NCBI GenBank assembly: GCA_000708835.1
Contig: DF237031.1
Coordinates: forward strand, 162,423-226,422
Reading direction: 5' to 3'
Length of the DNA stretch: 64,000 nt
From: Klebsormidium nitens
Lineage: Eukaryota; Plantae; Klebsormidiophyceae
The notes under the pieces were generated by a model that had not been told where the DNA came from, made no database searches, and saw nothing but the letters and a program-made list of their open reading frames with translations. Made by a program: the position numbers and the translations under genes. Shown one piece after another: positions 4,782-44,790 of this stretch (the first letter of the stretch is position 1; every line of letters starts with the position of its first letter).

Positions 4782-7700
4782 ATGGCTAAGGGCCTCCGCG
4801 AGTTACTGATGGAGCCGCCAGTTGTAAACGGACCCCCTGCCTGGACGCTGCAAGAGGAGCTTCTGCTGGCGCACGCTGTCATGCGCTATGGCACCGACGA
4901 CTGGAAGTTGGTTGCGCAGACGCTGGAGGGGAGGGCGCCGCTGCACGGGTTTGGAGGCCGGTTCTCCCCTGAGGTGAGGCTAATTCTGAAACATTTTCTG
5001 GGCTTGGGGTTTTCTCACGAACCGCGCGTTTTTCTTGAGACTAGTGGCGGAGATGCTGGAGAAGAGGGTGCTGCCAGGGAACGTCGGGGGCCGCTTTTTT
5101 CCGGAGGTGAGCCGGCATGACGGAAGCAAGGTACTAAGAAACCGTGCGGGTTTAAAGCCTACCAGTAATTGATTCCTTTGCGGTGGGTGTGGACAAACAA
5201 GATTTCAAAGTGACGGGGTCTGAAGCCTCAAACTCTATTCTTCAGCTATGCGAATCCCAGTTTGGGTTGCTGACTTTTTGTTCGGTACTGTTGCGGACGG
5301 ACAGGGAGATATAGCGGGGACTTTCTTTTTTCTCCTCGCGACAACCTCTTCGTTGACCCCGTTCTCCGAAGGCTAGTTGTTGACAGAACGTAGCCCAAAA
5401 AGTATTCAAGTGCTCACAACCGGAGCGCGTTCTTTTCACAGCTTTGCGAAGCCCAGTTCGGGATGCTTCACGCTCGACGCGGGGCTCTAGCGGTGGGGCC
5501 CGATGGCACAGCGGGCATCTCCCCATCCTCTGATGCACTATCATTCACATATTTGCGGTCTAAGATTAGTAAAGTCCGCAGTTCAATCGATAACTAGACT
5601 GCGATTTTCTTACAGCTTTGCGAAGCCCACTTCGGGCTGCTCCACGCTCGGTGCGGCGCTCTCGCGGCAGGGCCCGACGGCATAGCGGGGAGCATCTCGT
5701 CATATCTGAGGGCGCAGCGGTTGGCTGAGTTGCGAAATGGGCTGGCCGTGAGAGAAGACTCCATCAGGTGAGGGGCTCTGAGTTCTAACACATTGAGTGC
5801 TAAATCAGCGGGACGGATCCAAACCTTGCTTTTTGGGTTGGCAGTGTTCTGAAGAGATATTTTGTTGGGCTGGGAGCCTTTTGGCTTTGACTATTTTGGA
5901 AGTCTGAAAGACAGGTTGAGGACTTCTTGAAATTAAGACACTCGAACGAACGTGCTTTCAAGCTGCGTGCCTTCTGGACATTCAGTTTCTAAGTTTCTGA
6001 TGTTGCCCGACCCAGAGTTCTTGAAACATCACCAGTCTTGTCTGCGGACACCTGTCCAGAATCTGTAGCTCTCGATTATCGAGCAAGAAAACAAACGCAG
6101 AGAGTTCTGTCGAAGAGGGACACAAGCATATTGTGACGATCTGACGCCCTCCTTTTTGTGCAGCTTGCTCAAGGTCAAGATCCAGTCCCTCGAGAGCGCG
6201 CGCCTGACCCTCCGGTCCCAGCGACCCAAAGCTGACGTCATCCCCCATCACTTTTCTGCAAACTCGCTACCCCCGCAGCAGCCACTTCCGGAGGCAACAG
6301 CCCAAAGCCTTCCATTACACACAGACGGCAACGCTTCCGAGGGGGCGGCAACGGTTTGTCCCGCAGCCGAGGCGAACGGTTTCGAAACTGACACCTCTAG
6401 TTGGGGGGTAACGAGGCCGCCCCTTCCGAGTACCCCCCAAAACGGAAGCGACCAGTCCGCGCAATGGGGCGCGGGGATCCCTCTGGCTGGGCGACTTTTA
6501 GCGCCAACGCTGAGTCAGGAGATGGCCAGCTGGCTAGCGAGCGGCGCCGCCCCTCTGTTTGCGGACGACGGGACTGTAACGGCAACGTCCGAACACAGCA
6601 GAGAAGGGTCCGAAGCGTCCGATAACGTTCCGGGGGGGAGATCGCCGCCGGGCTTGAACCTCGACGTCGAGGAGCATTCCACAGCCGAAGCGGGCGCCGC
6701 TGACGTCATCGATGACGTGGCGGTGACGGCGGTGCGAGGAGTGGGGGCGGGAGAGAAGGGCGGCGTTGCTGCTGTCGTCAGCCCGACGGTCACGCCGACG
6801 TCGCTGCTCGAGGCGCACGCGGTGGAGGCTTTGCGGGAAGAAGGACAAGGGGAAAAGGGGACTGGCGATGAAGCTGTGCGGGTTGAGAACGAGAGGGGGA
6901 ACAAATTGGACGTGGAGAAAGTGGGCGAGAACGAGGGCGGGGAGGAAACAGGCAAAGCTGGGAACGAGGGTGGGGAGGAAAAGGACGTGTTGGCGACTGA
7001 GGAAGGCGAAAGGGTTGGGAAGGTAGAGAACGAGGAGGGGGAGCCGGGAGTGGCTTTGGGTGTTGAAGGTGGAAAAAACGACGGTGCGGTGTCTGGGGTT
7101 CCGGAGAAAGCAGAGAAAGAGGGGGAGGTTCCCGTTGCGAACTTCGAAGATTCGCGGGGGCAAGAGCCGGACGCTTTTGCAGTCCGATCGGAAGAGCACG
7201 GAACGGAAGGACGCACCGAAGAAGTCAAGGGAGGGGAGAGCGATTCGAAGCCCGAGAAAGCCGAGACGGAGGAGTTGGGAGAGAAGCCGGACGAACTTTC
7301 CGTCGAGAGGAGGAGAGACGGCGTGTTGGAAGGGTTAGTTGAGAAGCCGTCTTCTGTCAATGAAGAAGCACAACCGCGGCAAGGGCCGCGCTCTCCGTTG
7401 GAACGAGCGGAGCTTCCGGCGGAACAAACTGACGGTACAGCGGAGGTCTCGAAAGTAGCTGTAGAGGGGGCTGAACGGACGGGTGAAATAGCACGAGTGA
7501 CCGAAGAAACGGCAAAAGAGGCGCCGGAAGTGGCAGGCAATCCTTCGGTTACGGAAAAAGGACGAGAAGCAGGGGGGAGCGCTGTTGAGGACGGAAATGA
7601 AAACGGTAACGGACCGGGGGGCAAACCGGTGGCAGCCGCGCATGAACAGCCCCCTGCAGAAGCGTTTGACTTGGAACTGGAACTAGAACGAGAGGATTCG

Positions 7701-10700
7701 GAGGGCGCAGAAGGAACGTGGGAGGCCGCAGAGGAGCCGGCGCGGGCCGAGTCCCCTGACATCGAAGCGCGTTTGGAGCAGTGGCTCCGGTCAAAAATGG
7801 AGGAACGGGAACCGGAACCGGAACCGAAAGCGGAACCAGAACCGGAAGCGGAATCGGAACTCGACGTGCTGTTGGGAGACAAGTCCGCTAGTCAATCAAA
7901 CACAGAAGAGGGCGTGCAAGAGCGGCAAAAGGCCGGAGGGTCCGACATCAGGGACGCGGGAAAGGGGGAAACGGACCGGGGAAGAGCAGAGGGGTCTGAA
8001 AACGTCGATATTCCAATGTCGGCTTCGATTCTTGAGGAACTTAAAGCAGACACGCATGATGCGGATGCAATAAGAGAAGGGGCGGAAGGGGCCGGTCAAG
8101 TCGCTGAGCCGGCTGCTGAGTCTTTGGACGAAGAGCGCCCGACGACGTCCGGTGCTCGGGAGGAGCGTCCGAGAGCGTCCGACGAGCGGCCGATAGTGAA
8201 CAACGTGGCAGTGCCTGAGGAGCCACTCGCTGGGCTGGAAGATCGTCCGGGTGCTTCCGAGGAGCGTCCGAATGCTTTTAAAGAGCGTCCGGTCACTTCT
8301 GAGGAGCGTCCGGTTGTGGCCGAAGAATTTCCAGTGGCGTCTGAAGAGCGCCCGGTGTTGTCCGAAGAAGCACGTCCAGCGGCGTTCGAAGAGCGTCCGG
8401 TTGCGTTCGAAGGAGAACGTCCAACGGAGTCTGAAGAGCGCCCGTTGTTGTCCGGAGGAGAACGGCCAGCGGCATCTGCAGAGCGTCCGGTTGTGTCCAA
8501 AAGAGGATTCGTAGCGGCGTCCGAAGAGCGTCCGGTGTTGTCCGAAGCTGTTGAGGAAAAGGAGCTAACTCCAGTTGAGCATAAAGTCGAGACGGGTACT
8601 GTGCAACTGGAAGGCAGGGAGGGACTTGGGTTGGAGGAAAGGGATGCCAACTCTGGGGGGGGAGGATTAGGGGACGATACCGAGTTGGTTCAAGAAGAAG
8701 CTCGGGAGACGGGAGACGGAGAAGTTGTGGCAAGACCGGCGGAAGACTCCGCACAAGACACGGCTGATTTGTTGTTTGATGCGATTGGCGAAGAAGGGGC
8801 GGAGGCTACGAAGTCGGAGATCGGCGGTACTATCAAGCAGGTTGGGGGAACAGAGGGGGGCCGAGAAGCTGGAGGCTTGGTTGCCGGGCCGGAAGGAAGC
8901 AGTGCGTCGCTCGAAGATGCTGACGTCAGAGATGGAAATGATGCGGGTTTGTCTGCTGACGTGGCGGAAGACAGAGGCGGTTTGAGTGGGGACGATTTTG
9001 AAGATCCGTCCGAGGCGGTACGACGGGATACTGGGCAGGAACAGGTTCCGGAAAAGGGGGGGTTCCAGAAGAATGTTGACGAAGGCCTTAGTACCGGTGT
9101 TGAGGTTTCGGGAGGGCTGAGTGGGTTAGAGCTGCCAACGCAAGAGGAAAACCCGCCTTCGGAGTTGGTTTCTGAGACGAGATTACCAGAGCAGAGTACA
9201 ACTGGAATGACGGAGTTGGAAGCGGAGGGGTTGGAAACGAAGCGGAGAGATTCTAGCGCAGGCCCCGCAAGCGCCTCTCAAGAAGTTGAGCTGGGCCAAA
9301 TTAGGGGGCCGCAGGAGGTGGGGAAAATTGTAACGGCAGAGGCCCCGCCTCAGCCTTCTGGGGGGGTAGATCAAGGGGCACCGGCGACCCCCACGCTGCG
9401 ACTGGTGATGGAAGAAAGCCCGGGGAATGTGGGCAGCCATGACGCGGGTGCGTCTTTGGAAACCCAGAAACCAGACGCTCTTTCGGAGTTGGAGTTGAAC
9501 TCGGGAGCCGCCTTTCCCAAGCGGCTGTTCGACGCTCCGCCGCTTCCGCGGCGGGGGCTCGACCTGAACGCCGACGCCGTGGATGATGTCACAGGGCCGT
9601 TCGATGACGTCACGGGTGACGTCATGGGGTTGGGGAAGCCAGTGCTCGATCTGAACCAGGAACCGCAGGAGGCGGCGCTGCTGAAAGAGGGGGGCGCGCT
9701 TGGTGGGGAATTGCGTACTGGGGGGGAAGTTGCGGCTGCGAGCGAAGGGGGGGGAGATGGGGGTGCGGAGTCGGAACGGGGGGTGATGTACAGTGCGGAA
9801 AGCGCCCCCTCTGCTGTGGTTGATCAGTCGGTGGTACAGAGAGTGGTGGCTGACGGGTTTGTCACGGGGGGAGACGGAGAGGGAGAGGGGACGAGTCCGG
9901 TTGTAGGGTTGCGAGAATCGGAGGAGATAGCCGAAGAAGAAATGGGAAGAGGTAGAGCGGAAGTGGAAGGGGTAGAAGATGCGCAAAGAAGAGGAACTTC
10001 TGAGGCAAATGCAGTCGGAAAATCGGAGGAGAGGGCAGGAGTTCCAGAGGATAGTGCTGGGCAGAGTAGGGCGCGGGGGACGAGAGTTGGGGAGAAAGCG
10101 ACGGGGGTTCTGGAAGGCGCTCTTGATGTGAGCGCTTTAGTGGGGACGCCGAAGGAAGACGACATTGTAGGGGAGGACGAAGTAAAAAGGGAGGGGGCTT
10201 TGACGACGGCGGAAAGCTCGGGAAGCAAACGGAAGTTAGTGGGGGAAGCGGAGGTTGAGAATGCCAAGAGGGTGAGAACAGAAATTGCGGAGCCGGGGGT
10301 TGGGGTTGGGAGGAAGGAAGCGACGGCGCCGTTCGATCTGAACGCGCCCGTCGCTGACGTCAGCATTGACGCAGGGGATGAGGGGATCGCTTCCGTTGCT
10401 GACGTCAGCCTCGAGCCAGGGGGTGAGGAGACGGTCGGCGGAGGGGCGCCAGAAGGGGGTCTGGAAATGGGGGGGGTGATTGATATTCGGTCGACCTCCG
10501 AAGGGCCTACCGAGAGCGAATCGAAGGCGATAGCTGGAGCGAAGGGAAAGGTTTTGAAGGGGACGGCGCTCGCGCGAGCGGTGAAAGCGCAAAGGGCGGC
10601 GGAACGGAAAGCGGCTTTGGAGGCGGAACGGCAAGGTGGCGGGGAGGAAAACGAGGACGGGGAGAAAGTAGAGGAGGTTTCTGAATCGGGGGGCAAAAGC

Positions 10701-13700
10701 GCCAGCAAAAAGAAGGGAGGGGCGAGCAACACGGGGCCCGCGAGGGCGGCCCTGGCGGCGAAACTGCTGAGCAAAGCGCAGCGCCGGGCGGCGATAAACG
10801 AAAGGGGGGGGACGCCAGATAGCACCGCGGGGACCCCCTCGCCGCGGGATGCTGACGTCAGCACACCCCTGGGAAGCGAAGCGGCCGACGCTGTCGACTC
10901 GGACGACCCCCCCTCGCCGCCGGTAGAGTACGATTCCCCTGACGACGAGGGCGATGTCGTTTTCGAGGGGGTGTCCAATCAGGGGCCAATGCAGCCCCCT
11001 GAACCGGGGGCAGCGCTGAAGGGGGCTCCAGAGCAGGGGGCTACGCCCCCCCTGGAGAAGGGTTGGGAGAAGAAGCTGAAGATTGAAACGGGAGAAGGGG
11101 AGGGGAGCAGAGAAGTGTCGCCGGCAGGGGGGGGGAGCGCAAAGTCGGCACGAAAGGGGGGGTCTCGGACGCAGCCCGGGGGGGTGATGGCGCTGTGCAA
11201 GGAGGTCGTGCTGAGTCTATCGGCGCACCGGGCGGGGCACCTCTTCAGAGACATTGATTACGAGGTAAGGCTTGAATATGAATGGGTCGTGACTGTAAGA
11301 ATGTATCTCCCAAATTACAGATTCGTTTGTTGTGGCTCTACTGGAACAATTACAATCTCTCGAGAAAGAATCTCTCCACTGCATGATTGAGCGAAATTCT
11401 CCATAACCTGTTGACGATGACGGTGGCGACGGCGCCTGTGGCTGGTGGCCTCTTGATTTACAGCAATTTGTGTCAGCGTCTGTTGGCTACATGCTCCCCG
11501 TCAGCCAGATCGAAGATGATGTTGTTATCCGCATAATCCAGCATGCCGAGCCGACGTAAAGCCCTTCTTTGAAGAAAAACGCGTGTTTTCCGCATGTTGC
11601 TTAACCCAGCTCTTCTACTCCCTTGGAGCTGCCCAGGCCGCGACCCACATCGGTGGACTATGAATTCAGCACAATTCCTCACAGTGTGCACAAGACGCAC
11701 AGCGCTCCCTCGACAGTTCTCAGGCCGTCTGCATCATTTCCTTCAAAAGTTGCAAAGTTCCTGTCAAATCGTGCTTGAATCACTTCAAGAAAATGGCTGA
11801 AAGCTAGCTCGTTGTCGCCCTCAAGAGCTTCTCAGGCGGCGACCACATCGAGCAGAGACTTGGTTGCAACATGATCCAGCAGAACCAGTAAACATCCGTG
11901 TATTCCAATCGTGATTCGAATCGAGCCAAGAGACATGGCGCTCGCTGGCAGACATTTCTTTCCAAAGTGTCAAATACTGCTTCGAAACGGCTGAACCCCA
12001 GCTCTTTTGTCCCCTTCAGAGCTTCCCAGGCGGCGACCAGATCGAGCGGAAACTCGACCTCAACACGATCCGGCACAACGTGGACGACGGCGTTTACGAC
12101 GCGGAGGGAAGCGCCGCCTTCTACACAGACGTGCAGGCCATGTGTGACAACGTGACCGCCGCTTTTCCGCCGGATTCCGGCGAGCACGTGGCCGCGACCG
12201 CGCTGCGCGCCTTTGCCCATGGCGAGATGGGCCTGGTGAGACGGCTTGCGGAGTACTTCGCGTTTGTGCGTCGTTTCAAGTTGCTGGAACGTTGATCGTC
12301 TTTCGCTCAGCTGAGATAAGTGTTGCGCGACTTTGCGCATGGCAAGCTGGGCGTGGTGTGAAGGCTTGCGGACGTTTTTGCTTCGCTGACCCGCTTGGAG
12401 ATACATGAGTAGCTGTCTTCAGAAGAAGAGAGTGGCTGCAAGTTTGGAAGACGTGTTGTGGTCGCACAACTGGTGAGAATGAGTCCTTGCTTATCCGATG
12501 CAATGCTGAAGTATGAAAGTGAGAAGCAATTGCCACATGCGTGAGTTCGCAAGTGACTGATTCAAGCCGTTGTCTGCTCTCTCTGCAATGAAGTTCCGAA
12601 GAAGTGGTTGAAGCTGGCTCTTTGCAACTTTCTAGGTCTCGTATGGCTTTGTACGTGATAAACGCATCAAAGTAACGCCAGAATTTGAGTGGTGCAGCGG
12701 ATTGAATACAGTTGAAGGCAGAAAGATAAAAGGAGAGAGGAGGCCAAAGAAAAGACCGAAAAGGGAACAAGCATTGAAAAGCAGTGTTCTGCTAAATTTC
12801 CTCTTGCACGCTGTGCGCATACGGGACTACACTCTATGTAGAGCATGTGCTTTCTGGTGGATGCTCGAGCTTCTGTGGGCTCTTCTGCGCTGATTATTAG
12901 AAACTGCCCTAAAGACTTTCGAGGAGCTTGCCAACAAGTTCGTCGATTCGACGAGCCGAACGTTAAGAGCAGGGGGACTCTACATCTGACAGCACAGCTG
13001 GCACAGTTTTTGGCGTTTGACAGCTGTAAGCATTTCCGCTGCAGGTATGGAAGACGGAGGAGATGATCCGCGACGGCGCGCGCAGCTCCCGGCGGCCGCC
13101 GCCCAAGTTCGAGCCTTTCCAGGCAACCCCTCGGAGAAGTCCACTGGGGAAGAGCGAGGCTGCCAATGCGCTGGGGGGGGGAACCGGGCAGGCTTCCCGG
13201 CCACAGTCCAAGGGTAGGTCTAGGCTGGGGACTCCGACTGGACCCCCCCCTGAAGAGGGAAAGGAGGAGGGAGACGATGAAGAGGAGGTAGAGGAAATAG
13301 GAGAAGGGGGAGAGGTGGAGGCGGAATCGAAGAGTAGCAAAGGGAAGAGAAAGGGGGGGGTAAAGGGTGGGTCGGATGCAGCGACGCCAAAAGGTGGAGC
13401 GGGGGGTAAAGGGAAAAGTGCGCCAAAAGGAGAGGAGACTGCGTTTGCGGAAGAGAAGGGGAGCACGCCGAAAGGGGACGGGAAGGCGGGGGGCAGGCAG
13501 AAAGCGAAACCAAAAGCTTCGCCAAAGACCGAACCGAAGCCTCCCTCCAAGTCGCATAAGAAACAACAGCCTGCTCCAAAGTCAGAGCCGGCGAAGAAGA
13601 CGGGTGGGGGAGTAAAGGTTTCGCAAGCGGCGAAAGCAAGTCCTGTGGGCGAGATTTCAGAAATAGAGGAACCCAAGAAGGGCAAGGGAGTCAAACGAGC

Positions 13701-30266: not shown

Positions 30267-33200
30267 ATGGCTCCCTGCACTCTTTTTTCTGGCCCCACTT
30301 CAGCCAACGTGCCGATCATACATCCCAAACCAACGGATGTTGTCATCATTGGAGCGGGTCCTGGGGGGCTCCTCTTAGCGCTGTACTTGCTGGAGAAGGG
30401 GCAGGGAAGGTTCAAGGTGTCCATCCATGAAGCACGGGAGGATCCAAGGGAAACCTTGAAGCGGCCGCCTTCTCCACGAAGGTGATCTTCCTTGCTAGAC
30501 CACACTCCTCGTCACGCTTGAAAATGTTGATGTAGGTTTGCTGCTGTCTGATCATTGTGGGATTTGGCAGATTGTGGACAAGCCTGTGTCCTCCGTCGGT
30601 TTTCAAGAAAAGCCCGAATTGCACAACGTTGAAACCTGGTTCAATTTGTCAGCTGGTTGAATCCCAGGAGATCTCAGTTTCTGTGAAGGGTTGTTGGAGA
30701 ATAGGCCATGCAGATCCAAGTATCACTGGTCCACTTCAGACGTGTTGCTGATGAGAAACAGCTATGAGACAGACTTGTGGGAGCCAAAGTTTATTCAGAA
30801 TCTTGTCACAGAGATGCCGAAAGTGGACGTCACCTGTGAGTGCTTGGAGATATGTTGGAACGTGACACCTGTGGGGATTTCTTGATAAGGTCTCCCCTTT
30901 CCCGCTGGCAGGTCCCCTCTAGGTATTTGGCACCGGGGGCTGGCAGCACTTCAGAGGATAGAGGGCTTATGGCCACGGGTCAATGTAAGACGCTTCTTGC
31001 ACTTATAGCAAACTGCATCTTGTCTGGATAAGGTTTATAATATGCATGAGCAAGTTCGCAAGTGCCAGCTCTGGCCAACTTCGGGTTTTCAAATGCTTGA
31101 CACAAAGGAAAGACATTTGATGTGCATTAGTCACCTTTAGCTTTGACATTGAGCTTCCTTTGTATGGTCAAGACGTGGAGGATTGGTCCTTGGACTTTGA
31201 CCGTAAAAATATGAAGGGCTCTTCGAACCAGTGGTGATAAGAAGAAAGTTGTGCAAATATGAGTGGCTGCATCTCCATGCTTCAGGTGATCGAAGAGATT
31301 GTCGCCTGGTTGAATTGCCGCCGCCATGGCCTAGCACCGCTCTTCTTGAAATTAACACTTTGATTGCTTGGATGTGAAACAGAATCTAGTTCGAGCATGG
31401 CTTCTAAGTCCTTCTTCCTCTCCAGTAAGCTTTCGTAGCGTTCAATATGTGACGACTCGGAGTCAACACTCCAAGCGCTATGCTTGATATTATCAAGGCT
31501 AAGAGGAGGAACGCTAATGATTTTCACTACAGGTCTGAAACGTCATTTATTTCCATCTTCCGCAGGCTGTAGGGGCCCCGGCGTTTGTGTGCAAAGTGTG
31601 GGTTCTGGGAAGATTCTTGTCCGTTCCACATCGCGCAGAGGACAGCCCGAAGATCGTCACGGACCGTTGCGCCTTGTGTGCCGCAATGATGGACCTTCTC
31701 CTTGCAAGGTAAACCCCAGCGCGCTGCATTCACCGATTTCTCTTCAGTGATGAAAGAATAGATCGGGTCGGCCGGATTTGTACTCATTTGGGTGATTCTT
31801 TAGATAACGAGTCAGAGGAAAACCTTGCAAAAGCCCCAAGGAACTTCAAAAGAGTGTGCACTTAGAATAGCTTTGAACAAGACCGGGAAATCTGTTCTGA
31901 AAAGTCGAGGTCTGAACCAAGGGGAGACCGCTCCCTGCCTGAGAGGTGCTGCTGGTTTAGCGCTTCTTGGCTCCACTTTGTTCCAGTCACCCAAACTAAG
32001 CCTAAACAAAGTCGTTAACCAGCTTCTGAACTGCTCTGGCTGAAAAGTGTTCTTTGGTTTGACGAGGTAAGGGCTGGGTCAGCATATGCTCGTATCAGAG
32101 TCTTGCAAGATCAGACTGTCCACTGAAATGTCAGACATAAGCACAAGTGTCGACCATTCCGCTTTTCCTTCGGGCAGATCCGGCGCTTTGGACATCACAG
32201 TCAGCAATGAGCTGGAACATCACACGTCCACGCACCGAAAGAGTCCTGTAAGATCACGAAGCTTTGCTTGGATCAATCAGAGCCGTCGATTGCCAGAAAA
32301 CCCTGTCGACCGTTCCGTTTTCCGTTCAGGTACGGCGGATCTGGCCTCTTGGACATCACGTTCGACCAGCGGTGCACCTCGGTCGACCTCCGGACACGCT
32401 CCGTAACTTTTGCCGCTCCCGCTCCTTCCGCGGACCGAAACTCAGAAGGGCAGCCGGGACCGGATCAGGCCAGTGATGTCGGGGAGTGGAACCGTACGAA
32501 CGGAACCGGAATCACCAAGCGATATGATCTGATCGTGGGTGCTGACGGGGTGCACTCCGTGGTTCGACAGGGCATTGTGCAGTCGACGAGAAGGTAAGAG
32601 CGAGAGAACACATATGATTTCACGAAACGTGGTTACGACTCTCGCTTTGCATATGGACGCTTTGTAAGGGTGCTGTGTGGATTGGGAGACTAATGTGAGT
32701 TCGTCGGCTGAAAAATTCAGAAGGCAACGTTGCACATTCACAAGGGTCCCAGGATTTCTGGGGAGTTGCAGCACTCGGAACGGAGAATGCGTATGTGTGT
32801 TCTTCCGAAATTTCCATGGAAAGGAACTCCCCCCGAGCTTCCTAACATTTTGATAAGCATCTGAACAGCCCACAAGCTGAACCAGTTTAGATGCGGCCTG
32901 AAAAGTCTTGTTTTCTGTCCGCTTTGATTTGGATCTCTAGAAAAGTGGGACCTGTTTCCGGCCTTCTATCAAGTTAAATTAGCAGCTGGAGAAGAACTGG
33001 ACTGTTCATCAGCTGACTTGAATCCAGATTGCCAACCCTGGATGCTGGTTTCTGCTCCAGGAAACTGGCGGCAGTGTCACGATCAAAGAGCGATCCAAAA
33101 AAAACTGTAAGACCTGGTGCGGGCGACCTTAACGTCCGAACCGCTCGCTTTGCAGGTTCGACTTCGAGCAGCGAGACATTGGCTGGGAGTGGCTGGTAAC

Positions 33201-36200
33201 TCGAGTCCCGGTTCCACCACCCCCAGTGAAGGGCGACTGGGGCCTCATCGTTCTGGGGAAGCCGTTCGCCCTCCTTACGCCTGGGTGCCCCTCGTAAGTT
33301 TCCGCTGCGCCGACACACACAGCGCAAAAGAAATGGATATTACCGGGCGGCGATATTTTGGACGAGATCTGAAAGGCTTGCTGATACTTTTAGAAATATG
33401 TATCTTAGGCGGAGGGGAAACGCAATCTGTCAGACCCGAATGGTTTTGAAGCCCTGAAGCCGTTGGGCTTTTATCGGTTTCATACCAAGAGCCCAGAAAA
33501 GGGAACAACCTGATCTCGCTGAATTGCCGTCGAATTTGAAAAAGCTCAGCGTTAGCGTGAAGAAAGTTCCTGGTGCTTGGGCGCAGGCTGGAAGGGGACT
33601 CTCAGATGAACTTCGTAATCGGCTGGACATCGCACGAGAAGCCCCCCGAGTGGCACGCCTGCACCACTGCCGAAGACGCCAAAGCTTACCTGGACCGGGC
33701 CTACCCGTGGTTGAACATTCCGCTCAAGTCAGCGGAGGCGTTGCTGAAACAGAGGGTCAACACAAGCATGCAGGTAAGCGTGTTTTGGCTAGGTGGCTCG
33801 CAACTAGACGCGTTGTGCCATGAGACGGATTCAGTAAAGTTCAACCGGGATCGGCTCGTGCTCGGTTTCACAGAGTTGCGCCCGTTCCGTTTTGCAAGGT
33901 TCGGAAGAAACTGGAAGTTGTAGCCAGGAAATTCTGCAGAGCCGTTAGGATTGTCCGCCTCGAGCCTTGCCTTTGAGCGGATTCTCCGCTCTTTTTGCAG
34001 GACCAGAATTGAGCTTTAGCTTTCTTGAAACTGAGCCTTGAACCTTATTAGTACTGGTGCTGGTAAGATTCGATTTTTTGAATAGCAAGGCCAATGAATT
34101 GTGAGGTCAAGCCCGGGGGACGGGAGGGTCTGCCGGGTGGTTAGGGTGCGCTCGGTTGCGGAACGCGTAACTTTCTGAGTTGGTATTTTTGCTTTGTGTA
34201 AGCCCGGTCGTTTGACTTATCGTTTATTCAGGCAGCTTAGATCTCATAGAAGTCGAAACGCATCTCAAGTGTTGTTTTTACAGTCTGTACTTGCTTTTTG
34301 CAGCTCAAGTGCAGCGTGTACCATGATACGGAGGGCCGTGCGGTGCTCATTGGCGACGCAGCTCACGCCACCAGTCCGACACTCGGCCAGGGATGCAACA
34401 CGGCATTGGAAGACGCCGCCACATTGGCGAGCCTTCTTCTCGAGACGGTAAGAGCGGATTTTGAACTAGGCGCTTTAAGCCTGGAAAACTAGCAAGCTTT
34501 GCTTGAAACCTGCGCCACCGACTCGGCGCACATTTTCGATGCGACTCGGGCCTCCGCAGCAATCAGGCAAGAGCATACCAGGCCAGTAGCACCACATTCT
34601 CGGTCCTTCTCACCAGAAAGTCACAGTCGTGATCGGCACGACTTTCAATCTTTCCGGGACCCTCGAATCTGGGGCCTATCAATCGGTCCTTGTAGCTGCA
34701 CAGAATCTGGGGCTTCTTTTGATTGCAAGGTTTTTACGTTAACTTGATCAAAACGTCAGAACTTGGTGGCTTACTTGCTGAATGCACGGTGCGTTAAGCT
34801 ATAAACTGAACCAGCGCTTTGAAGTCGTGCTCAGCTCGACCACCTTATACCATGCTGTCTTTCCATTCGATCCGTTCTGAAAATGATGTTGCGCTGGCGT
34901 CTCCTAAGGTCACACTCTCGGCGACCCGATTCCCCTCTATCTCGCCCTCAACACGTGTCAAGCGGTGCAGAGTCGCGCTCGCATGTGCCGCTCCGGTCAG
35001 CGTGCAGCGTTCGTTGCATCCCCGCCCGTTCCGTTCCCATCCGTTGTTGTTGGCACAGGGTCCGGATCTCCGAAGACACGAGTAGCCATCAGTGCGCGCG
35101 CCCGCAATGACAGCTGTCACCGTAGAATCACGAACTAAAGGTAACTGTCTCTTCACAGGAGACTGTTTCGGAGCTGCCAGACGCTCTCGAGTCCTACTCG
35201 GGGCTGCGGGTGCCTGAAGGTCACGCGTTGGTGGACGTAGCAGAAAGCCAAGGGCCCATGGACCGGTGGGGGGTGATCAGGAACATTCTCAACATGGTCT
35301 GGCAGGTACGAAATAATGACAGCCCAACGGGCGGGTCCTCAGCTGGCGGGTCATCAAATAAATGATCAGTTGCGAGATTTGACGGTTCATTCGAACTACT
35401 GATTGTTTGAAGTGAACCACTGACTGTGGCACTATTTCTTGAGAGGATGTAAGTCGCTTCAAGGGCCAACTGATCGGAAGTCGTCGATGTGCCAATGGAG
35501 GTCCCGCTTTTAGAAGGAAAGTAAAATATTACGAAGTTACACCTCGTGCTCGCATGAAAAGCGTGGAATGACTCTCGCCGGGCAAGTGCGTAGCCTGCAA
35601 CATCGACGCAGATACAATATTACTAAGGCAGTCTCGCCTTGGGTCTGCTGAAAAGATTCGCGGGCCTCGCTCGTGTAGCATTGCACTTCGTTGGCTGGTC
35701 TTCTTTTCGGATGAAGAATTCAGAAAACAAATCGTTGATAGTCTTCGCAGATGAAAAAGTCAGAGAAAGTGCTTAAAAGACTTTACCTAAGCTTTCGTCG
35801 TCGCTTCAACGGCGCTGATGCTTAACGCTGAATCGTGCGCAGACTATGCTGAACCGCCTCTTTCCCAAGCTGTTTCCGCCGCACATTCTGATCTCCGTGA
35901 GCGCGGGAAAGCCTCTATCTGAGATCTACAAAGCGAATAAGGCAAGTCGCCCGGAAGCCAGCTTCTCTGGCCCGGCCGTTCACAAAGCGAGCGCACCTTT
36001 CTCAAATCTGTGTCTCGCTGACTACTTCATTTGCCCCTCATTCCGCTTTTGTTCATTTTTCTAATTTCGCCATCATTTAACGATTCCGTCTGGAGCTGCC
36101 GTTTCACGCGGGCTTGTAGAGTTGGCTGGCCAGAGTCACGAGCTAGTCTGTAGTACGTCACGTGCTCGACGTTCTTCCAGAGAGTCACGCGACAGACGTC

Positions 36201-38963: not shown

Positions 38964-39035
38964 TTGAGATATTCGCCTTTAGCTTATTTACCTCGCATGT
39001 TGAGATCTTTGTCTTTAGCTCATTCACCTCGCATG
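38964..39035. repeat. 36-bp tandem duplication (2 copies) upstream of the oxygenase-prenyltransferase gene
   Basis: ttgagatattcgcctttagcttatttacctcgcatg followed by ttgagatctttgtctttagctcattcacctcgcatg. Confidence 0.8.
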
Positions 39036-39175: not shown

Positions 39176-42100
39176 ATGTTACATCGTTTTGAAGCCCTTA
39201 GTCACGTCCCCTTCAACCGAGCTCCAATGATGCAGGCGCACGCGCTCTTGGCTGCGTCCGCGTGCGCTTTCGTAGCCACTCTGGCATTTCTTTACCCGTC
39301 CCTTTCCAAGATCTGTCTATGCATTGCCTGCGCAGCCTACGTCTTTGTCACAGTCTCTGCCCGTGTGCTAGCGCTATACCCACCAAAGTCTAGGGGCTAC
39401 ATCCGAGACTCTGCGCTGCTTGACAATGCAGAGTGCATGGCGGCAGTGGTAGTCTTAACTTTACAGATTATGCTGACGGACCCTGTTTTAAGGCAAGCTC
39501 TCCAGAAGCACAGCCGGTTTCAGAAACAGCCCCTCGTGCGGATTCTGAGGACCATGACCGCGTTTGAGCTGGTGGCGCGCGGGAGCGCTAAGGAGCGGCG
39601 GAAAGTCGCAGAGTGGATCAAACGGATACATGGCGGCATTGGAGGTAAAGTGGTGTGGGCGAGTCTGATTTTGCACTCTCAATGATGTAAGGAGTGGCAG
39701 CATTTTAGTAGCTACAGGCATGATGTGGGCTCTTGACTTTGCCCGTACTTGCACATGTTTTGAGTATTATCAAGCCGTCAGTTCGGTCTACAAGGGGCAG
39801 AGAGCGACAATCGGAAGTAAGAGGGGAAAGAGCTCTCGAAATGACATTTGAAAGATGCTCGTCAACATAGTAGTAGTTTCTCTGTGTTCCAACTTAAATT
39901 TCATTGATGCTGACATAAGTTCATTTGCTACTGGTCAGGCTTCTGGAGTACAAGGATCACAGCGGTAGCTAGATAGATCTGAATTCAGCATGTGGGAACC
40001 AGGTCAGCCTTACAGCCTTAGCTTGTAGGACAGGTTATGTTACGGGCTAGCTTGATTTAAGAACAGGCTCGTTGTTTTTCAATAGATCTGAGGGCGAGCT
40101 GGAGTTTGTGCCCGCCTGACACCGTTGAGTGGAATGTGAGACTGAACTTGGAGCTAGTCCCGTTAGTTTTTGTGGAGCTCATTCAGGAAGGCAGCCGAAT
40201 CTGCAACGAAACCTTGAGTGTCGCAATGGTTTTGGCTTCTTAAGTAATAATCAGTACAGGTCAATTGTCTTCCCCTTCCACATCTTACGGTCGCGGCAAC
40301 GACCTTTGTACTAGAAGATGAAATGCAAACATTGCGCTGCAAGCCAGAGAAAGCCAAAGCATTCTGTTTCCTTTCTTCATCATGGCCTTGAGACTTCTCC
40401 TGTGCAGTACTGCAGGTGTGCTATTGAGCACTACAGCCAACAAGTCAGCTCACTTTCCTCGCAGTCCTCGAAGCGGATGCAAATAGCTTCTTAATCTGTC
40501 TCTTCGAACATTTTTTGGAAACCCTCAGTATCTTCCTTCCACAGGTTCTGTTTCCGTAAACGGAAGCACTCAGCCCTACGGCTTTACCAAGGCCCTGCAG
40601 ACGTGGGTGTTGGCGTCCCTGGCGCAGGCAAACCTGTGCTTTCAAGAGGAGATGCTCGCGACACGGGGCCTCGGGAAAACGGCGGACGAGATCGTCGCTC
40701 GGACGATGCTCTTTCAGAGGAGGCTTGCGGACGTGGGCTTAGAAGAGCTGCCGCTCGACCGCGCGCAACTAGAAGCATACATGGAGGAGAGGAAGCGGGA
40801 CTTGGTACGGATTTTCCTAGGTGCTCGGGGTTTGATGTGCTGCGGTAACCTCGGTTTCAAAAGCCTCTTTTGCACGTTCGGAATCGCCCGATTGTCCATG
40901 TCAGATGACATCATTCCTTAAGCAGCGCTTGAAAAGTTCCAAAGCTGATTAACATTCTGCAAGTGACGTAGCGCGCTATTGTCTTATGACGAGGCGCGTC
41001 CAAAGGCTTCTTGGAAGGTTCTGGGCCGACATGAGCATGACAAAGATCTTCAGCTAAACGAGAGTTACGTGTTACCAGTGCTGTCAAAACGCTTGAGCAG
41101 GCGGGCCGCTCCTCCAATTGAGCCCCTGGTTAGAATGACGGTAAAAAGCGTTCCGATCTGATCTACTGCCTCACATAAATCCAAGGGCACGACTGACTTT
41201 TTCCAGAAGAGAAACCAAGAAGAAGTCCCTCGTCTCTCAACTAGTGCATAATCTCCAGATCGATGTGTACTTCGTAAGCCCACCGGGACCGGTCTCTCTT
41301 TTTGCAGGACTATTGTCGTGGGAAACAAGATATGGCAGCAGACGTCACGACAGCGAAGCGTCAAGGGGCCGAGTCTTTCGTTGGGTGGTGGCCCGGCCTC
41401 TCACTACATGTCTACATCCTTTTTACCAGTCTAAGCTATCGCCTGCTCTATGCGGCGCTCACGGGTCAAGCGAAAAGTATTCACAGGGCTGCACTGAAAT
41501 GTCTCAAGGTGAGAGCGTATCGCCCTCATTCCTCAGCTCGGATCCAGATTGAAAGGGTCGTCTGTCTCATGATGTGAGTCTAGGCGACCAGAAGGTCGAT
41601 TCTATTGACTGCAAAATCGCCAGGATCCTTGCGACCCGTGCTAACCTTAGAAAACCTCAGACAACGAGGTGCCGAAGTAGCGGGCTTGATCCGTTGGCCT
41701 CTCATCCGGAAGTTCAGCCGAAGGTGCCTCTGCTGAAGGCTGATATCGCGGCTTTTCAGCGGAAGCCGCCCTTAGGGTGATGCTCGATCGAGAAGCTCGA
41801 TCAAAATTACATGGATCAGAAGATTGAAGTTGTGTCCAATGGGAATCACAAGTCTTGAAACAGAAACGTTGTGAAAGCAGAAAGTTTAGCCCTTACTTCT
41901 GCTCAAATAAGTTCAGTCCCGGCATCTTTAATGTGAAGCCCACTGAACCCGCTTCTGCCCCCTCCAGGTGACGTATCACTTTTGGGCGGCCCTGACCCCC
42001 CCCCTCACGCCTCGAGGCCTCTTCGCTCTTAGCTGCACTGCGGTCCCCTCTCTATTCCCAGCCTTTGTTGAAGTTTACCAGGAGATCTTGGGCTGCTCCG

Positions 42101-44556
42101 AAGCCTCCGAAACGGATGCCAGAGAGTTTCTTTTTGGGGGGGTACACGACGCGAGCACTCTAGACCACCTGCTAGAGCCGTCTCTGACCCCCCTCGCGCG
42201 CTTGGCCCGGCTTCCCAAGATTTTCCTGGTGCACTTTTGGAAGAGTTGCGCGGCGGCCGTGGACCGGATCCGGCTCAGATTCCTGTGGGCGGAGCTCAAC
42301 GGAATGAAAGGCAGGGCGGATTCCAGTGTGCCGGTGCACTTGGGGGTTATCTCGGACGGAAACCGTCGGTTTGCGCGGAAGCTGGGAAAGGACCCCTTGT
42401 ATGGGCACACGAAAGGTGGTTCACTCAGAATGATTCCGCCCACTTCTACAAGAAACGTTCAAGGCTGCTTTCTTATCACTGGATTGCATGTTGTCTTGAA
42501 CGCGTTGATCGCTGCTTCGCCTTTTGACCGTGTGTCAAAAGTAACGTAACGGGTAACTGCGAACATTGCGTCTTTTATTTCTGTGTCCTCGATTCAATTG
42601 AGAGTCAAAGGGTTCGACTTGATCCGCTTCAAACGAATTCGGCAGATGCATCCGTTTATCGTATGTAAGGCAGCAAGTGACTCTCAAAGTTCATTCAGCA
42701 AGGCTCAGGACTGTTCTAGACTTGCCGGACAACCCGGCCTTAATGGACTACTTGCATTCCGATTCGCACCCTCCGAAAGACCTTTTCCAGAAGCCCCCAA
42801 ACTCGGATACTTACTATGGACGACTTTCAAAAACCAATTCCTCTACAAGCATTCAAAGTGCACTAATCTTCTTTGCCCCCAGGCTCCATGAAAAGCGCCA
42901 GCGTCTTTGAGTGGGCGTTTTTGGCGGGTATCGAGTACCTGACAATCTGGATCTTCTCCGATGACAACTTCAAGCGTTCCCGGGCGGAAGTCGACGGCCT
43001 GATGCGTATCTTTGAGGAGGAGTGCGAAGACAAATTGTACGACGGCGTTTTGTATACATATCATGTGAGTGGCTGGTTGTCGATAGTAAGTTTCCCGCTT
43101 GTAGGGCATCCGAACCCTTTAGCGCTAGAACATCTACAGCAGTGGCGTCATCAAAACCCCTGGATCCGCGGGTGATGATATACTCAGATACGTGGCGATG
43201 TTTTGAAGTAGATGTCGAGGTGTCCACGGGCTCCTTGAAGGCACAGCTTACCTGATGCTCGTTTCGACGACTTTCGTTCTTGAACTGAGGATCCGTTTGC
43301 ACCGAGACTCAGGAGCCTCCCGTTTGCTTTTCGCTCCTAGTCATGTTGGTTCCTAGCATAAATATCGGACAGCCCAACTCTGAATATCGACTTTCAGGAC
43401 AGGCGGTTGAAAGAAAAAGCATCAGGCAGGTAACAACAGCAAAGAATCTCCTTCTACAAACTCGCAGTATGTATGATTTATGTCTACTTGTTTCTGAATC
43501 TCGACCGGATCAGCGTGGATTAGAGGAATATCGGAGATTACTAGCAACGTTTTTACATGTACAGAACTTGTGTGATCCGTGCGCAGCAGGATATCTATCT
43601 CAGACCTGCGGTGTCATCGGCCGGTCTCAATGACCGGACCGAATGCAAAAAGCGGAATTCGCTCGTGTTTGCTTCAATTCCTAGGTCCGTGTACTGGTTA
43701 TCGGCGACCGTTCAAAGCTTCCGGAAAGCACACAGAAAGCCGTCGCCAGAATAGAAGCGGCGACAGCGCACAACCGGGGCAGGACGCTGGTGGTCGCCAT
43801 GGCGTATGGCGGCCGCGGCGAGATTGCGGCCGCGGTGCGAGTCTCGCTGCAAGGGCTCAAGGGAGCGGAGCTGGAAGAAAGGTGCGTGTCGCATACGTTT
43901 GTAGCCTTCACGGTTCTGCTTGCAAGTGAGAATACACTTGGGTGGCACAATATGGTCCGTGTGTGCTTTTCTCAGAAGTTAACATGAAGCTTGCCGCAGT
44001 CTTATAGTCCTCAAGAAGGAACTCGAGCGCAGATTCACTGGGCGCGTTTACAAAGGAAATCGTACCGCGCATCAGCATACTGTACTTGAAACCTCGCACT
44101 TACGCAAAATTCTCTACCGTTCTTGTTTCCTCAGAAGCGTTATTGTCATCGATGCCCTTTTTAAGGGCTCACCGGCGCAATCGATATCTCGGGAGAACTC
44201 TGCCATCCGGATATCTACGTGCAAATGGGCCTGTCAATCTAGCTGGTAGATTACTTCCTGAGTCATACCTTCATTCCCAAGACGGCATTCTCATTTTGCG
44301 GCGCTTCACTTCCAGAGTCGGCTTGTTCTCCGAGAAAGACATCGACGCCCACACGCACTGCGCGCGGTTGGGGCTCCCCCCGGTTGACGCCATCCTCCGC
44401 ACGAGCGGCGAGCGGCGGCTGAGCGGCTTCATGCTGTGGGACAGCGCGTACTGCGAGCTCGCATTCGTTCCGCGCTCCTGGCCGGAGCTCACCGAGTGCG
44501 ACTTCGTGCGCGCGCTCCTGGACCTGTCGAAGCGCGCGCGCAGAAAAGGGCAGTAA
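39176..44556 (+). CDS. Fusion protein: N-terminal hydrophobic segments + MpaB/rubber-oxygenase (DUF2236) domain + cis-prenyltransferase (UPPS family), ~650-665 aa
   Basis: Exons 39176 (or ATG 39227)-39644, 40545-40804, 41308-41508, 41968-42415, 42883-43064, 43685-43881, 44316-44556; GT-AG, phases consistent (1998 nt). DUF2236-like motifs: LQIMLTDPVLRQALQKHSRFQKQPLVRILRTM...IKRIHGG and ALQTWVLASL. CPT motifs: HLGVISDGNRRFA, GHTKG, WIFSDDNFKRS, AMAYGGRGEI, VDAILRTSGERRLSGFMLWDSAYCEL, and C-terminal RRKG. Confidence 0.85.
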
Positions 44557-44790
44557 GCGGGGGATCCCCCAGTCATGCCAGTGGGCGGAACTCTTGACAG
44601 CGACTCCGTGCGCGCTCTCCTGGACAAGTCGAGGCGCGCGCGCCGGAAAGGGCAGTGAGCGGGGGATCCCCCAGTCATGGGCGAAATTTCGGAACACCCT
44701 AGCAACGACTCCTTGCGCGCACTCCTGGACATGTTGAAGCGCGCGCGCAGAAAGAGGCAGTTTTAGAGCGAGGGATCTCTCAGACCTGGG
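44499..44790 (+). repeat. Three tandem copies of the last codons, stop and flank of the prenyltransferase gene
   Basis: Units start at 44499, 44601 and 44706 (periods 102 and 105 nt): DFVRALLDLSKRARRKGQ*, DSVRALLDKSRRARRKGQ*, DSLRALLDMLKRARRKRQF*. Confidence 0.9.

Follow-up and report, generated by a model that had tools for sequence, protein, structure and literature searches.

Within the 64-kb window (the whole stretch of DNA that we analysed), seven GT..AG exons at positions 39176–44556 of the plus strand encode a 665-aa open reading frame (ORF), the sole stop-free model to emerge from enumeration of GT/AG sites. Its junctions at 40804/41308 and 41508/41968 are the same as in a preliminary description of this DNA, which had read the locus as one gene for one polypeptide: a hydrophobic N terminus, an oxygenase domain of the Lcp/MpaB type and a cis-prenyltransferase (CPT) with its catalytic motifs. 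That reading holds, with exon 4 bridging the two domains.

Exon 1: 39176–39644, plus strand; start, hydrophobic segment(s) and first oxygenase-domain helices; PF09995 profile positions 13–74
Exon 2: 40545–40804, plus strand; middle part of the oxygenase domain; PF09995 profile positions 89–156
Exon 3: 41308–41508, plus strand; aa 244–310, where the oxygenase half is least conserved
Exon 4: 41968–42415, plus strand; junction exon with the last oxygenase helices (aa ~311–352), linker helices and CPT start
Exon 5: 42883–43064, plus strand; CPT helix with S485-x-x-N488-x-x-R491; PF01255
Exon 6: 43685–43881, plus strand; CPT core (VIGDRS..., AMAYGGR); PF01255
Exon 7: 44316–44556, plus strand; CPT C terminus; PF01255; PDB alignments to UPPS-type enzymes
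Tandem repeat: 44498–44761, plus strand; period 102, 2.5 copies

Exon 4 is part of a continuous ORF (41968–42549) that spans the end of the oxygenase domain, the linker and the CPT motif DGNRR, and its CPT start reads HLGVISDGNRRFA; exon 7 ends with the stop codon TAA at 44554–44556. The gene model's only uncertainty is the start codon, which may lie at 39176 or at 39227, because relatives align with the window protein from about M18/M19 (39227). Hydropathy revealed a single long hydrophobic stretch, at aa 21–68. Through the tandem repeat, the end of the coding sequence and its stop codon recur in the 3′ flank, where copies 2 and 3 would end ...RALLDKSRRARRKGQ and ...RALLDMLKRARRKRQF, each followed by a stop; such a repeat of the gene's 3′ end is not obvious in the relative L001. 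Elsewhere in the window, ten large ORFs, including one of 1744 aa, had no Pfam match.

Evidence for a single fused gene

Spliced GT..AG joints with zero mismatches were present in contigs of public runs, at 40803/41307 (exons 2–3) in run X2 and at 41506/41966 (exons 3–4) in run X1, a second record of which spans 42060–42290, within exon 4. Both of the junctions for which the preliminary description had proposed an RNA check are therefore represented in spliced contigs, a support that amounts to two of the six junctions at a depth of 3–4, all of it from a single study, the runs of which carry their RNA label by a guess only. One contig sits within intron 4 (42597–42843), and one carries a piece of intron 3 in inverted orientation.

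Nucleotide similarity (blastn) to the relatives L001 and L002 is restricted to the seven exons, and that of exon 1 stops at 39646–39648. In L001 (~79% identity), all seven exons recur and encode an orthologous 649-aa ORF; exons 2–7 are equal in length in the two genes (exon 3 is 201 nt in both), and exon 6 is 88% identical. The oxygenase half, the linker and the CPT half are all under purifying selection, with dN/dS values between the window gene and L001 of 0.17, 0.19 and 0.07, respectively (0.34 for exon 3; 0.16 overall).

Because a single ORF in exon 4 runs through the domain junction, spliced contigs connect exons 2, 3 and 4, and a seven-exon relative exists with low dN/dS, positions 39176–44556 of the plus strand almost certainly hold a real, functional fused gene. 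Might two separate adjacent genes, or a decaying pseudogene, have been merged in error? Split annotations do occur elsewhere, in Ilyonectria and for one Marchantia paleacea copy, and exon 3 alone has no Pfam match. Both readings are contradicted by the exon 4 ORF that contains the domain junction, the splicing of exons 2–3–4, the single intronless ORFs of fungi and liverworts, the overall dN/dS and the lack of any stop in two lineages; we rejected them and regard an erroneous merger as extremely improbable.

The oxygenase domain

Exon 1 alone matched the Pfam profile PF09995 (MPAB_Lcp_cat; formerly DUF2236) with an E value of 1.4e-8 and 35.5 bits (cut-off 23), exon 2 alone with an E value of 0.015, and the colinear homologue P0012, the closest to the window protein at 33% identity, with 138 bits. 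The scan for DUF2236 and Prenyltransf that had been suggested earlier thus found both, PF09995 in exons 1–2 and PF01255 in exons 4–7. The oxygenase domain is a predicted haem domain of the Lcp/MpaB type. Its motif R122-I-L-R125-T126 is encoded at 39539–39553 and H152 at 39629–39631, and the codons first reported for R122 (39539), T126 (39551) and H152 (39629) are exact. The haem-site residues R122, T126 and H152 are invariant in the 33 fused homologues aligned.

An AF2 model of P0012 residues 1–339 (pLDDT 82.6) matched t-anethole oxygenase (8s1j, Z 15.8) and Lcp (5o1l, Z 14.1), with the next match at Z 5. On the strength of this model, the N-terminal domain of the family is predicted to fold like Lcp and t-anethole oxygenase, two haem enzymes that cleave C=C bonds. 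Fold comparison alone reached Lcp; searches of PDB at the sequence level, with exon 1 and with a 14-sequence profile of the N-terminal domain, gave no match to it. By structural-alignment offsets from the P0012 model, we infer that the R, R, T and H of the family correspond to Lcp R164, K167, T168 and H198. In Lcp, R164, T168 and H198 are crucial active-site residues, K167 is the distal haem ligand and E148 is the catalytic base (PMC5522427). The window protein has Arg125 at the position of Lys167, and no conserved Glu is evident in the aligned family block about 16 residues before R122, the position of E148; we therefore rejected the reading of the domain as a true Lcp-type rubber oxygenase. 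The preliminary description, which had seen no Glu at that position and had not predicted true rubber cleavage, is borne out on this point. At the position of P0012 H108, a His that is nearly invariant across the family, the window clade has Gln190.

The cis-prenyltransferase domain

Each of exons 5, 6 and 7 alone exceeded the PF01255 cut-off of 27 bits (E 6.7e-11 and 42.6 bits, E 2.2e-12 and 47.5 bits, and E 2.8e-19 and 70 bits, respectively), and exon 4 alone gave a weak match over the first 21 profile positions. The CPT is complete, as had been claimed: it retains DGNRR (42355–42369, exon 4), GH (aa 456–457), the S-x-x-N-x-x-R helix of exon 5, YGGR in exon 6 and, in exon 7, RTSGERRLS (44398–44424) and a C-terminal RxG, here R662-K-G664 (44542–44550). 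C-terminal RxG is a mark of homomeric CPT enzymes. The catalytic and substrate-binding motifs aligned to solved CPTs, exon 5 to DHDDS and tomato CPTs, and D440, H457, S485, N488, R491, R614, E618, R620, S622 and R662-x-G664 agree with the family consensus. The window clade has Ile483 where 33 of 33 other fusions, and also five solved CPTs whose alignments were compared, have Ala; a bulky residue at this position presumably limits chain length in Rv1086, which we take as a lead only.

Distribution and history of the fusion

The fusion is not unique to the window, being already listed in databases from liverworts and fungi. We found about 40 colinear fused proteins in liverworts and in ascomycete and basidiomycete fungi, with a Pfam content of PF09995 and PF01255, among them Marchantia polymorpha MpCPT6 (P0047), Riccia fluitans KAL2631233.1 (P0011), a Calypogeia protein and Orbilia oligospora TWF569_000732 (P0037); the ESM Atlas cluster of the MpaB–CPT fusion family has 65 members. 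The many liverwort copies overturn the earlier remark that this architecture was not known from land-plant CPTs. The preliminary description had also considered that the fusion might prove widespread and already characterised: it does recur in liverworts and fungi, but our literature searches found neither a publication describing or characterising an MpaB/PF09995–CPT fusion, MpCPT6 included, nor biochemical data for any family member. Marchantia has eight CPT genes, the functions of which, other than that of MpCPT5, are still open (bioRxiv 10.64898/2026.07.16.738752).

In BLASTP, about 35 fused proteins each aligned with the window model as one end-to-end HSP (best E 2.5e-93), single HSPs with about 28 family members spanned aa 80–664, and the window linker aligned with the linkers of liverwort and fungal fusions, with motifs in common. 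An alignment that included the window exon pieces as query retrieved no full-length protein from the lineage of the window itself. In a search whose pattern lay within the CPT half, no fused prokaryotic gene occurred among the 80 matches listed of at least 575, all 80 being prokaryotic CPTs aligned to query residues ~381–645. These alignments place the window gene in a small family of colinear fusions that is eukaryotic, with members from this algal lineage, liverworts and fungi.

In a tree with 16 prokaryotic CPTs, the CPT domains of all fusions grouped together as one clade (SH-aLRT 99), in which the window copy, with six introns and about 30% identity to other fusions, is a deep branch. Liverwort copies group with ascomycete copies, the genes of both are intronless, and a single streptophyte clade was rejected (AU test, p = 0.0013). 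On account of this grouping, the AU test and the lack of introns, the sequences provide good evidence for gene exchange between liverworts and ascomycetes.

Proposed mechanism and alternatives

Our best explanation is that a single expressed gene yields a membrane-anchored two-domain enzyme. Its homodimer-type CPT would join IPP to an allylic diphosphate, giving a Z-prenyl diphosphate whose chain would probably be short or medium in length; with O2, the haem domain at the N terminus would then cut a C=C bond of the chain, or of a compound bearing the transferred chain, and the product would be an isoprenoid ending in an aldehyde or ketone. Taken as a whole, from the expressed, membrane-anchored two-domain enzyme to cleavage of the CPT product or its derivative by the haem domain, we give this explanation an even chance of being right. 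A shared pathway in which both domains work on the same isoprenoid we rate slightly below even, and 'make and cleave' would be a plausible mechanism. More speculative is a self-contained two-step enzyme that would build a Z-prenyl chain, use O2 to cut one defined double bond in it and so release a specific oxo-isoprenoid that serves as an 'apo-polyprenoid' signal or in defence, its gene having moved among organisms of the soil surface, namely liverworts, fungi and a terrestrial alga of the streptophytes; we offer this version as possible but doubtful.

The fusion could also be real without its domains being consecutive catalysts, if the haem domain oxidises an unrelated substrate or, as a haem-based O2/redox sensor or a membrane anchor, controls the activity or location of the CPT. 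Lcp counts among the globins (PMC5522427), and globin-type haem domains could in principle be sensors; an equivalent of the Lcp catalytic base is not evident and Gln190 replaces the family His in the window clade. Moreover, linker residues 267–310 are of low confidence in the full-length AF2 model of P0012, so no fixed channel is predicted between the active sites. Yet Lcp and t-anethole oxygenase, the two proteins of this fold for which we found a known function, and MpaB all act by cleaving C=C bonds, which for two of the three lie in isoprenoid chains; the haem-site triad is invariant in about 35 fusions, and fusion or tight adjacency has been retained across three lineages. We consider such uncoupled roles somewhat unlikely. 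A three-step route is a further alternative, in which the Z-prenyl diphosphate made by the CPT is first passed to an acceptor by another enzyme, such as a UbiA-type transferase, and the MpaB-like domain shortens the chain after this attachment, as with MpaA and MpaB in mycophenolic acid synthesis. In Ilyonectria robusta, a PF09995 gene and a PF01255 gene are adjoined by a UbiA prenyltransferase gene, an arrangement that by analogy echoes MpaA/MpaB logic; a P450 and an FAD monooxygenase flank the Clonostachys copy, an FAD monooxygenase neighbour is common to the window copy and L001, and PgMpaB takes various O- and C-farnesylated substrates (PMC6900556). By contrast, we saw no UbiA gene in the vicinity of the window gene, at the Orbilia locus or at the liverwort loci, and neighbours vary between lineages, which leaves this route quite improbable.

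Both halves of the protein belong to well-understood families, of which one makes cis-isoprenoid chains and the other cleaves isoprenoid or alkene double bonds; to our knowledge, the Lcp/MpaB type is the only haem fold specialised in cutting such bonds. From the retention of the covalent fusion under selection in an alga, liverworts and two phyla of fungi, one would predict an as yet undescribed route by which cleaved isoprenoids arise; this prediction is testable in tractable systems (Marchantia MpCPT6, or expression in yeast or E. coli). The gene would represent a further clear case of fungus–liverwort gene exchange, and the eight CPT genes of Marchantia include at least one, MpCPT6, that is not a plain CPT.

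Comparison with known systems

The window protein shares with the liverwort and fungal fusions a hydrophobic N terminus, the oxygenase domain, a conserved linker and a CPT ending in RxG, in that order, as well as the invariant residues and a common CPT clade; it differs in its low identity, its introns, which the liverwort and ascomycete genes lack, and the substitutions Ile483 (for an invariant Ala) and Gln190. With LcpK30 (5o1l), a latex-clearing protein that acts as a rubber oxygenase, it has in common the Pfam family and the R...T...H haem-site residues, and the P0012 model predicts the same fold for that homologue (237 residues aligned). Lcp is a secreted bacterial enzyme without a fused CPT, and besides the Lys167 and Glu148 differences its R-to-H spacing is 34 residues, whereas H152 lies 30 residues after R122.

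Like the window protein, MpaB, an ER-bound enzyme of mycophenolic acid biosynthesis, is a eukaryotic membrane-anchored member of PF09995. PgMpaB cuts a C=C bond in a short prenyl chain, farnesyl, and its Arg and His residues are essential (PMC6900556). MpaB stands alone, however, and acts on a substrate made from FPP by a UbiA-type transferase, whereas the partner in the window is a covalently fused CPT. The t-anethole oxygenase of Stenotrophomonas maltophilia, the best structural match of the P0012 model (237 aligned residues at 11% sequence identity), is alkene-cleaving by name, but it is bacterial, stands alone and acts on an aryl-propenyl substrate. For the CPT half, the closest counterparts are homodimeric bacterial-type enzymes (UPPS 1jp3; Rv1086 2vfw): that of P0012 matched UPPS with E values of 1e-40 to 5e-41, DHDDS with about 7e-36 and plant plastid CPTs also more weakly than UPPS. 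The window protein has the same catalytic motifs, IPP-binding motifs and C-terminal RxG as these enzymes, to which it adds about 430 N-terminal residues.

One gene encodes both domains

The fusion is real: four independent lines of evidence assign its Lcp/MpaB-type oxygenase (PF09995, MPAB_Lcp_cat) and cis-prenyltransferase (CPT; PF01255, Prenyltransf) halves, at 39176–44556 (+), to one gene. We enumerated GT donors and AG acceptors at most 12 bases from the exon ends in the preliminary description, and chose the stop-free combination that keeps the CPT motifs and has its exon lengths matched by L001, a relative on a 188-kb contig from a JGI metagenome. The resulting model has seven exons and encodes 665 amino acids (aa), with a single long hydrophobic stretch at aa 21–68 (Kyte–Doolittle scan). 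The DNA has a GC content of about 0.51. Each exon was scanned separately against Pfam, as follows.

Exons of the fusion gene and their Pfam matches
39176–39644, +, exon 1: PF09995, E 1.4e-8, 35.5 bits (cut-off 23), profile positions 13–74
40545–40804, +, exon 2: PF09995, E 0.015, profile positions 89–156
41308–41508, +, exon 3: without a Pfam match
41968–42415, +, exon 4: weak match to PF01255, first 21 profile positions
42883–43064, +, exon 5: PF01255, E 6.7e-11
43685–43881, +, exon 6: PF01255, E 2.2e-12
44316–44556, +, exon 7: PF01255, E 2.8e-19

The anatomy of a fused gene read earlier from the sequence alone was right, and its codon positions were exact (R122, 39539; T126, 39551; H152, 39629).

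Exon 4 is a single open reading frame (ORF; 41968–42549). Its residues P321, L323–T324, G327, P337, E349–I350 and G352 match the conserved helices that close the oxygenase half in other fusions, and it also encodes the linker helices and the start of the CPT (HLGVISDGNRRFA). Because one ORF holds the oxygenase end, the linker and the CPT start, the domain junction is independent of any splice. The exon 2–3 and exon 3–4 joints, singled out in the preliminary description, were found in Logan contigs from two public runs with the same organism label, at 40803/41307 and 41506/41966, with GT..AG ends and zero mismatch to the window; these are two of the six junctions, at a depth of 3–4, and the status of the runs as RNA is a guess. 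One contig from the second run (X2) lies wholly within intron 4 (42597–42843), and one from the first (X1) opens with 58 bases of intron 3 in inverted orientation (41896–41953), linked to the beginning of exon 3. Such contigs could stem from unspliced RNA, from carried-over DNA, or from an artefact of assembly or reverse transcription.

Nucleotide similarity between the window and the contigs L001 and L002 (the latter from a Logan assembly) is confined to the seven exons (for example, 39359–39646, 40530–40795, 41977–42418 and 44326–44562). The orthologous ORF in L001 has seven exons, of which exons 2–7 are the same lengths as in the window, and encodes 649 aa that are 79% identical to the window protein. 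Between the two, dN/dS is 0.17 in the oxygenase domain, 0.19 in the linker and 0.07 in the CPT (Nei–Gojobori; dS about 1).

A tandem repeat of 36 bp in two copies (86% match; 38964–39035) lies about 140–210 bp upstream of the start codon. Another, of 102 bp in 2.5 copies (44498–44761), duplicates the end of the coding sequence, with its RxG tail and stop codon, into the 3′ flank; an equivalent is not obvious in L001.

A catalogued family in liverworts and fungi

With exon 1 as the query, 14 matches emerged from a full HMMER scan covering 1.84 billion representative proteins. Two were exon-1 fragments of close relatives (75% and 69% identity), and the five longer ones (502–685 aa) each carried PF09995 followed by PF01255. 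The liverworts Riccia fluitans, R. sorocarpa, Calypogeia fissa (at least nine paralogues), Marchantia paleacea and M. polymorpha ('MpCPT6') have the fusion, so the earlier view that the architecture was unfamiliar in land plants was mistaken. Among fungi it occurs in Orbilia, Arthrobotrys, Dactylellina, Clonostachys rosea, Fusarium equiseti, Bacidia, Mycena and an Auriculariales species, and the ESM Atlas holds one 65-member cluster of this architecture. The spliced window protein aligned to about 28 fusions as a single high-scoring segment pair over aa 80–664 (28–33% identity; best match P0012, a fused homologue 33% identical to the window protein, E 2.5e-93), so that colinearity and homology extend over the whole fusion, linker included. 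Among the best 80 matches from 185,579 prokaryotic species genomes, searched with a pattern in the CPT half, no fused gene was present and the matches were CPT-only (query residues about 381–645), a negative that is weak because of the position of the pattern and the restriction to those 80.

The fusion family is catalogued in sequence collections and uncharacterised; within it, the window copy forms a divergent branch that is rich in introns. MpCPT1–8 have been named, with MpCPT5 a neryl diphosphate synthase and the other functions remaining to be determined (bioRxiv 10.64898/2026.07.16.738752); the word 'oxygenase' is absent from that paper, and a literature search found no other naming MpCPT genes. 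No description of a PF09995–PF01255 fusion was found in the literature searched, which mostly excluded subscription journals.

At two loci the annotation gives each half a gene of its own, the two lying side by side on one strand with a gap of 105 bp in Ilyonectria robusta (L089, 6001–9461) and of 33 bp in M. paleacea (L090, 6001–7652); fission of the gene, a frameshift in the copy or a split in the annotation may account for this. Some Calypogeia fissa paralogues (P0027, P0030 and P0032) no longer have the second Arg that precedes the R-T pair, or else the conserved His-Ser (as in RHLVRT, RQLVRT, TQS and TDS), motif losses which suggest that function was relaxed or altered once the gene had multiplied.

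The oxygenase half retains haem-site residues

An AF2 model of P0012 residues 1–339, built on a family alignment of 41 rows, was all helical (mean pLDDT 82.6, pTM 0.75). Foldseek ranked Lcp K30 (5o1l), a latex-clearing protein, at the top (probability 1.00). In VIA-align the model matched t-anethole oxygenase (8s1j_B; Z 15.8, 237 residues aligned, model residues 1–266) and Lcp (5o1l_B; Z 14.1, 237 residues aligned, model 1–263 on chain 131–399), with the third-ranked match at Z 5.0. With model residue 1 set on Lcp residue 131, P0012 R34, R37 and T38 map to Lcp R164, K167 and T168, and H64 lies near H198 if a four-residue difference is allowed. The window equivalents, R122, R125, T126 and H152, are all invariant in 33 homologues.

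In Lcp, Arg164, Thr168 and His198 are crucial near the haem, Lys167 is the distal ligand and Glu148 the base (PMC5522427). By contrast, the distal Lys is replaced by Arg in the window protein, in which an equivalent of Glu148 is not evident. On these two counts the protein is not a strict rubber oxygenase, in agreement with the preliminary description, which did not predict true rubber cleavage.

The CPT half has complete catalytic motifs

P0012 residues 340–573 are closest to bacterial homodimeric UPPS-type enzymes (E 1e-40 to 5e-41, versus about 7e-36 for DHDDS). A full-length P0012 model (pLDDT 80.4, pTM 0.78) has a low-confidence linker (267–310) between two confident domains. The window CPT retains D440, H457, S485, N488, R491, R614, R620 and S622 and a terminal R-K-G. 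Unusually, Ile483 stands in place of an Ala that is invariant in the other 33 fusions and also occurs in the five solved CPTs compared; in Rv1086, bulk at this site shortens the product, which offers a lead rather than a result for the window CPT.

Trees and introns point to a liverwort–ascomycete transfer

In a quick full-length tree, liverworts group tightly with ascomycetes in a single clade; the window clade (the window protein and its close relatives) lies outside it on a long branch, with basidiomycetes and P0012 further out. When the tree was built from CPT domains, with 16 prokaryotic CPTs as the outgroup, every fused CPT domain fell in one clade (SH-aLRT 99), and the window clade was sister (94) to the ascomycete-plus-liverwort clade (itself 100). 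An AU test rejected a tree with the window clade and liverworts on one side and all named fungi on the other (log-likelihood difference 33.5, p = 0.0013), for a grouping chosen after the tree had been seen and with long branches present. The M. polymorpha, R. fluitans and C. fissa genes are intronless, since gene length equals 3 × (aa + 1), as are those of Orbilia and Clonostachys; the Mycena gene has introns, and the window gene has six. Read together, the trees, AU test and lineage intron content give good evidence for transfer of the fusion gene between liverworts and ascomycetes. The window lineage seems to have held the gene independently and for a long time, whether through transfer or through ancient descent with loss.

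Gene neighbours and a possible coupled function

Just upstream of the fusion in the window lies a monooxygenase gene.

31572–35953, +, multi-exon class A FAD-dependent monooxygenase gene: PF01494, E 6.3e-12 on 34301–34450, with a GDAAH motif there

A PF01494 gene also adjoins the fusion in L001, in opposite orientation between the two genomes, and may be a functional partner or a chance neighbour. The Clonostachys fusion is accompanied by a P450 and an FAD monooxygenase, and no telling neighbours were found at the Orbilia or liverwort fusion loci. Elsewhere in the window, an uninterrupted ORF of 1744 aa (6156–11390, +) is without a Pfam match and is overlapped by antisense ORFs of up to 455 aa.

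A single polypeptide carries a hydrophobic N terminus, an oxygenase-family domain with conserved haem-site residues and a CPT with complete catalytic motifs. A coupled make-and-cleave function is a reasonable hypothesis: the CPT would make a Z-prenyl diphosphate, and the haem domain would use O2 to cleave a double bond of the Z-prenyl chain, acting on it at once or only when it has been passed to an acceptor. PgMpaB, an oxygenase of mycophenolic acid synthesis, cleaves a farnesyl chain at its terminal olefin and requires Arg125, Arg152 and His157 (PMC6900556). Transfer before cleavage is suggested by the Ilyonectria robusta locus, where a UbiA prenyltransferase gene lies downstream of the neighbouring oxygenase and CPT genes, an arrangement that recalls the MpaA/MpaB pair.
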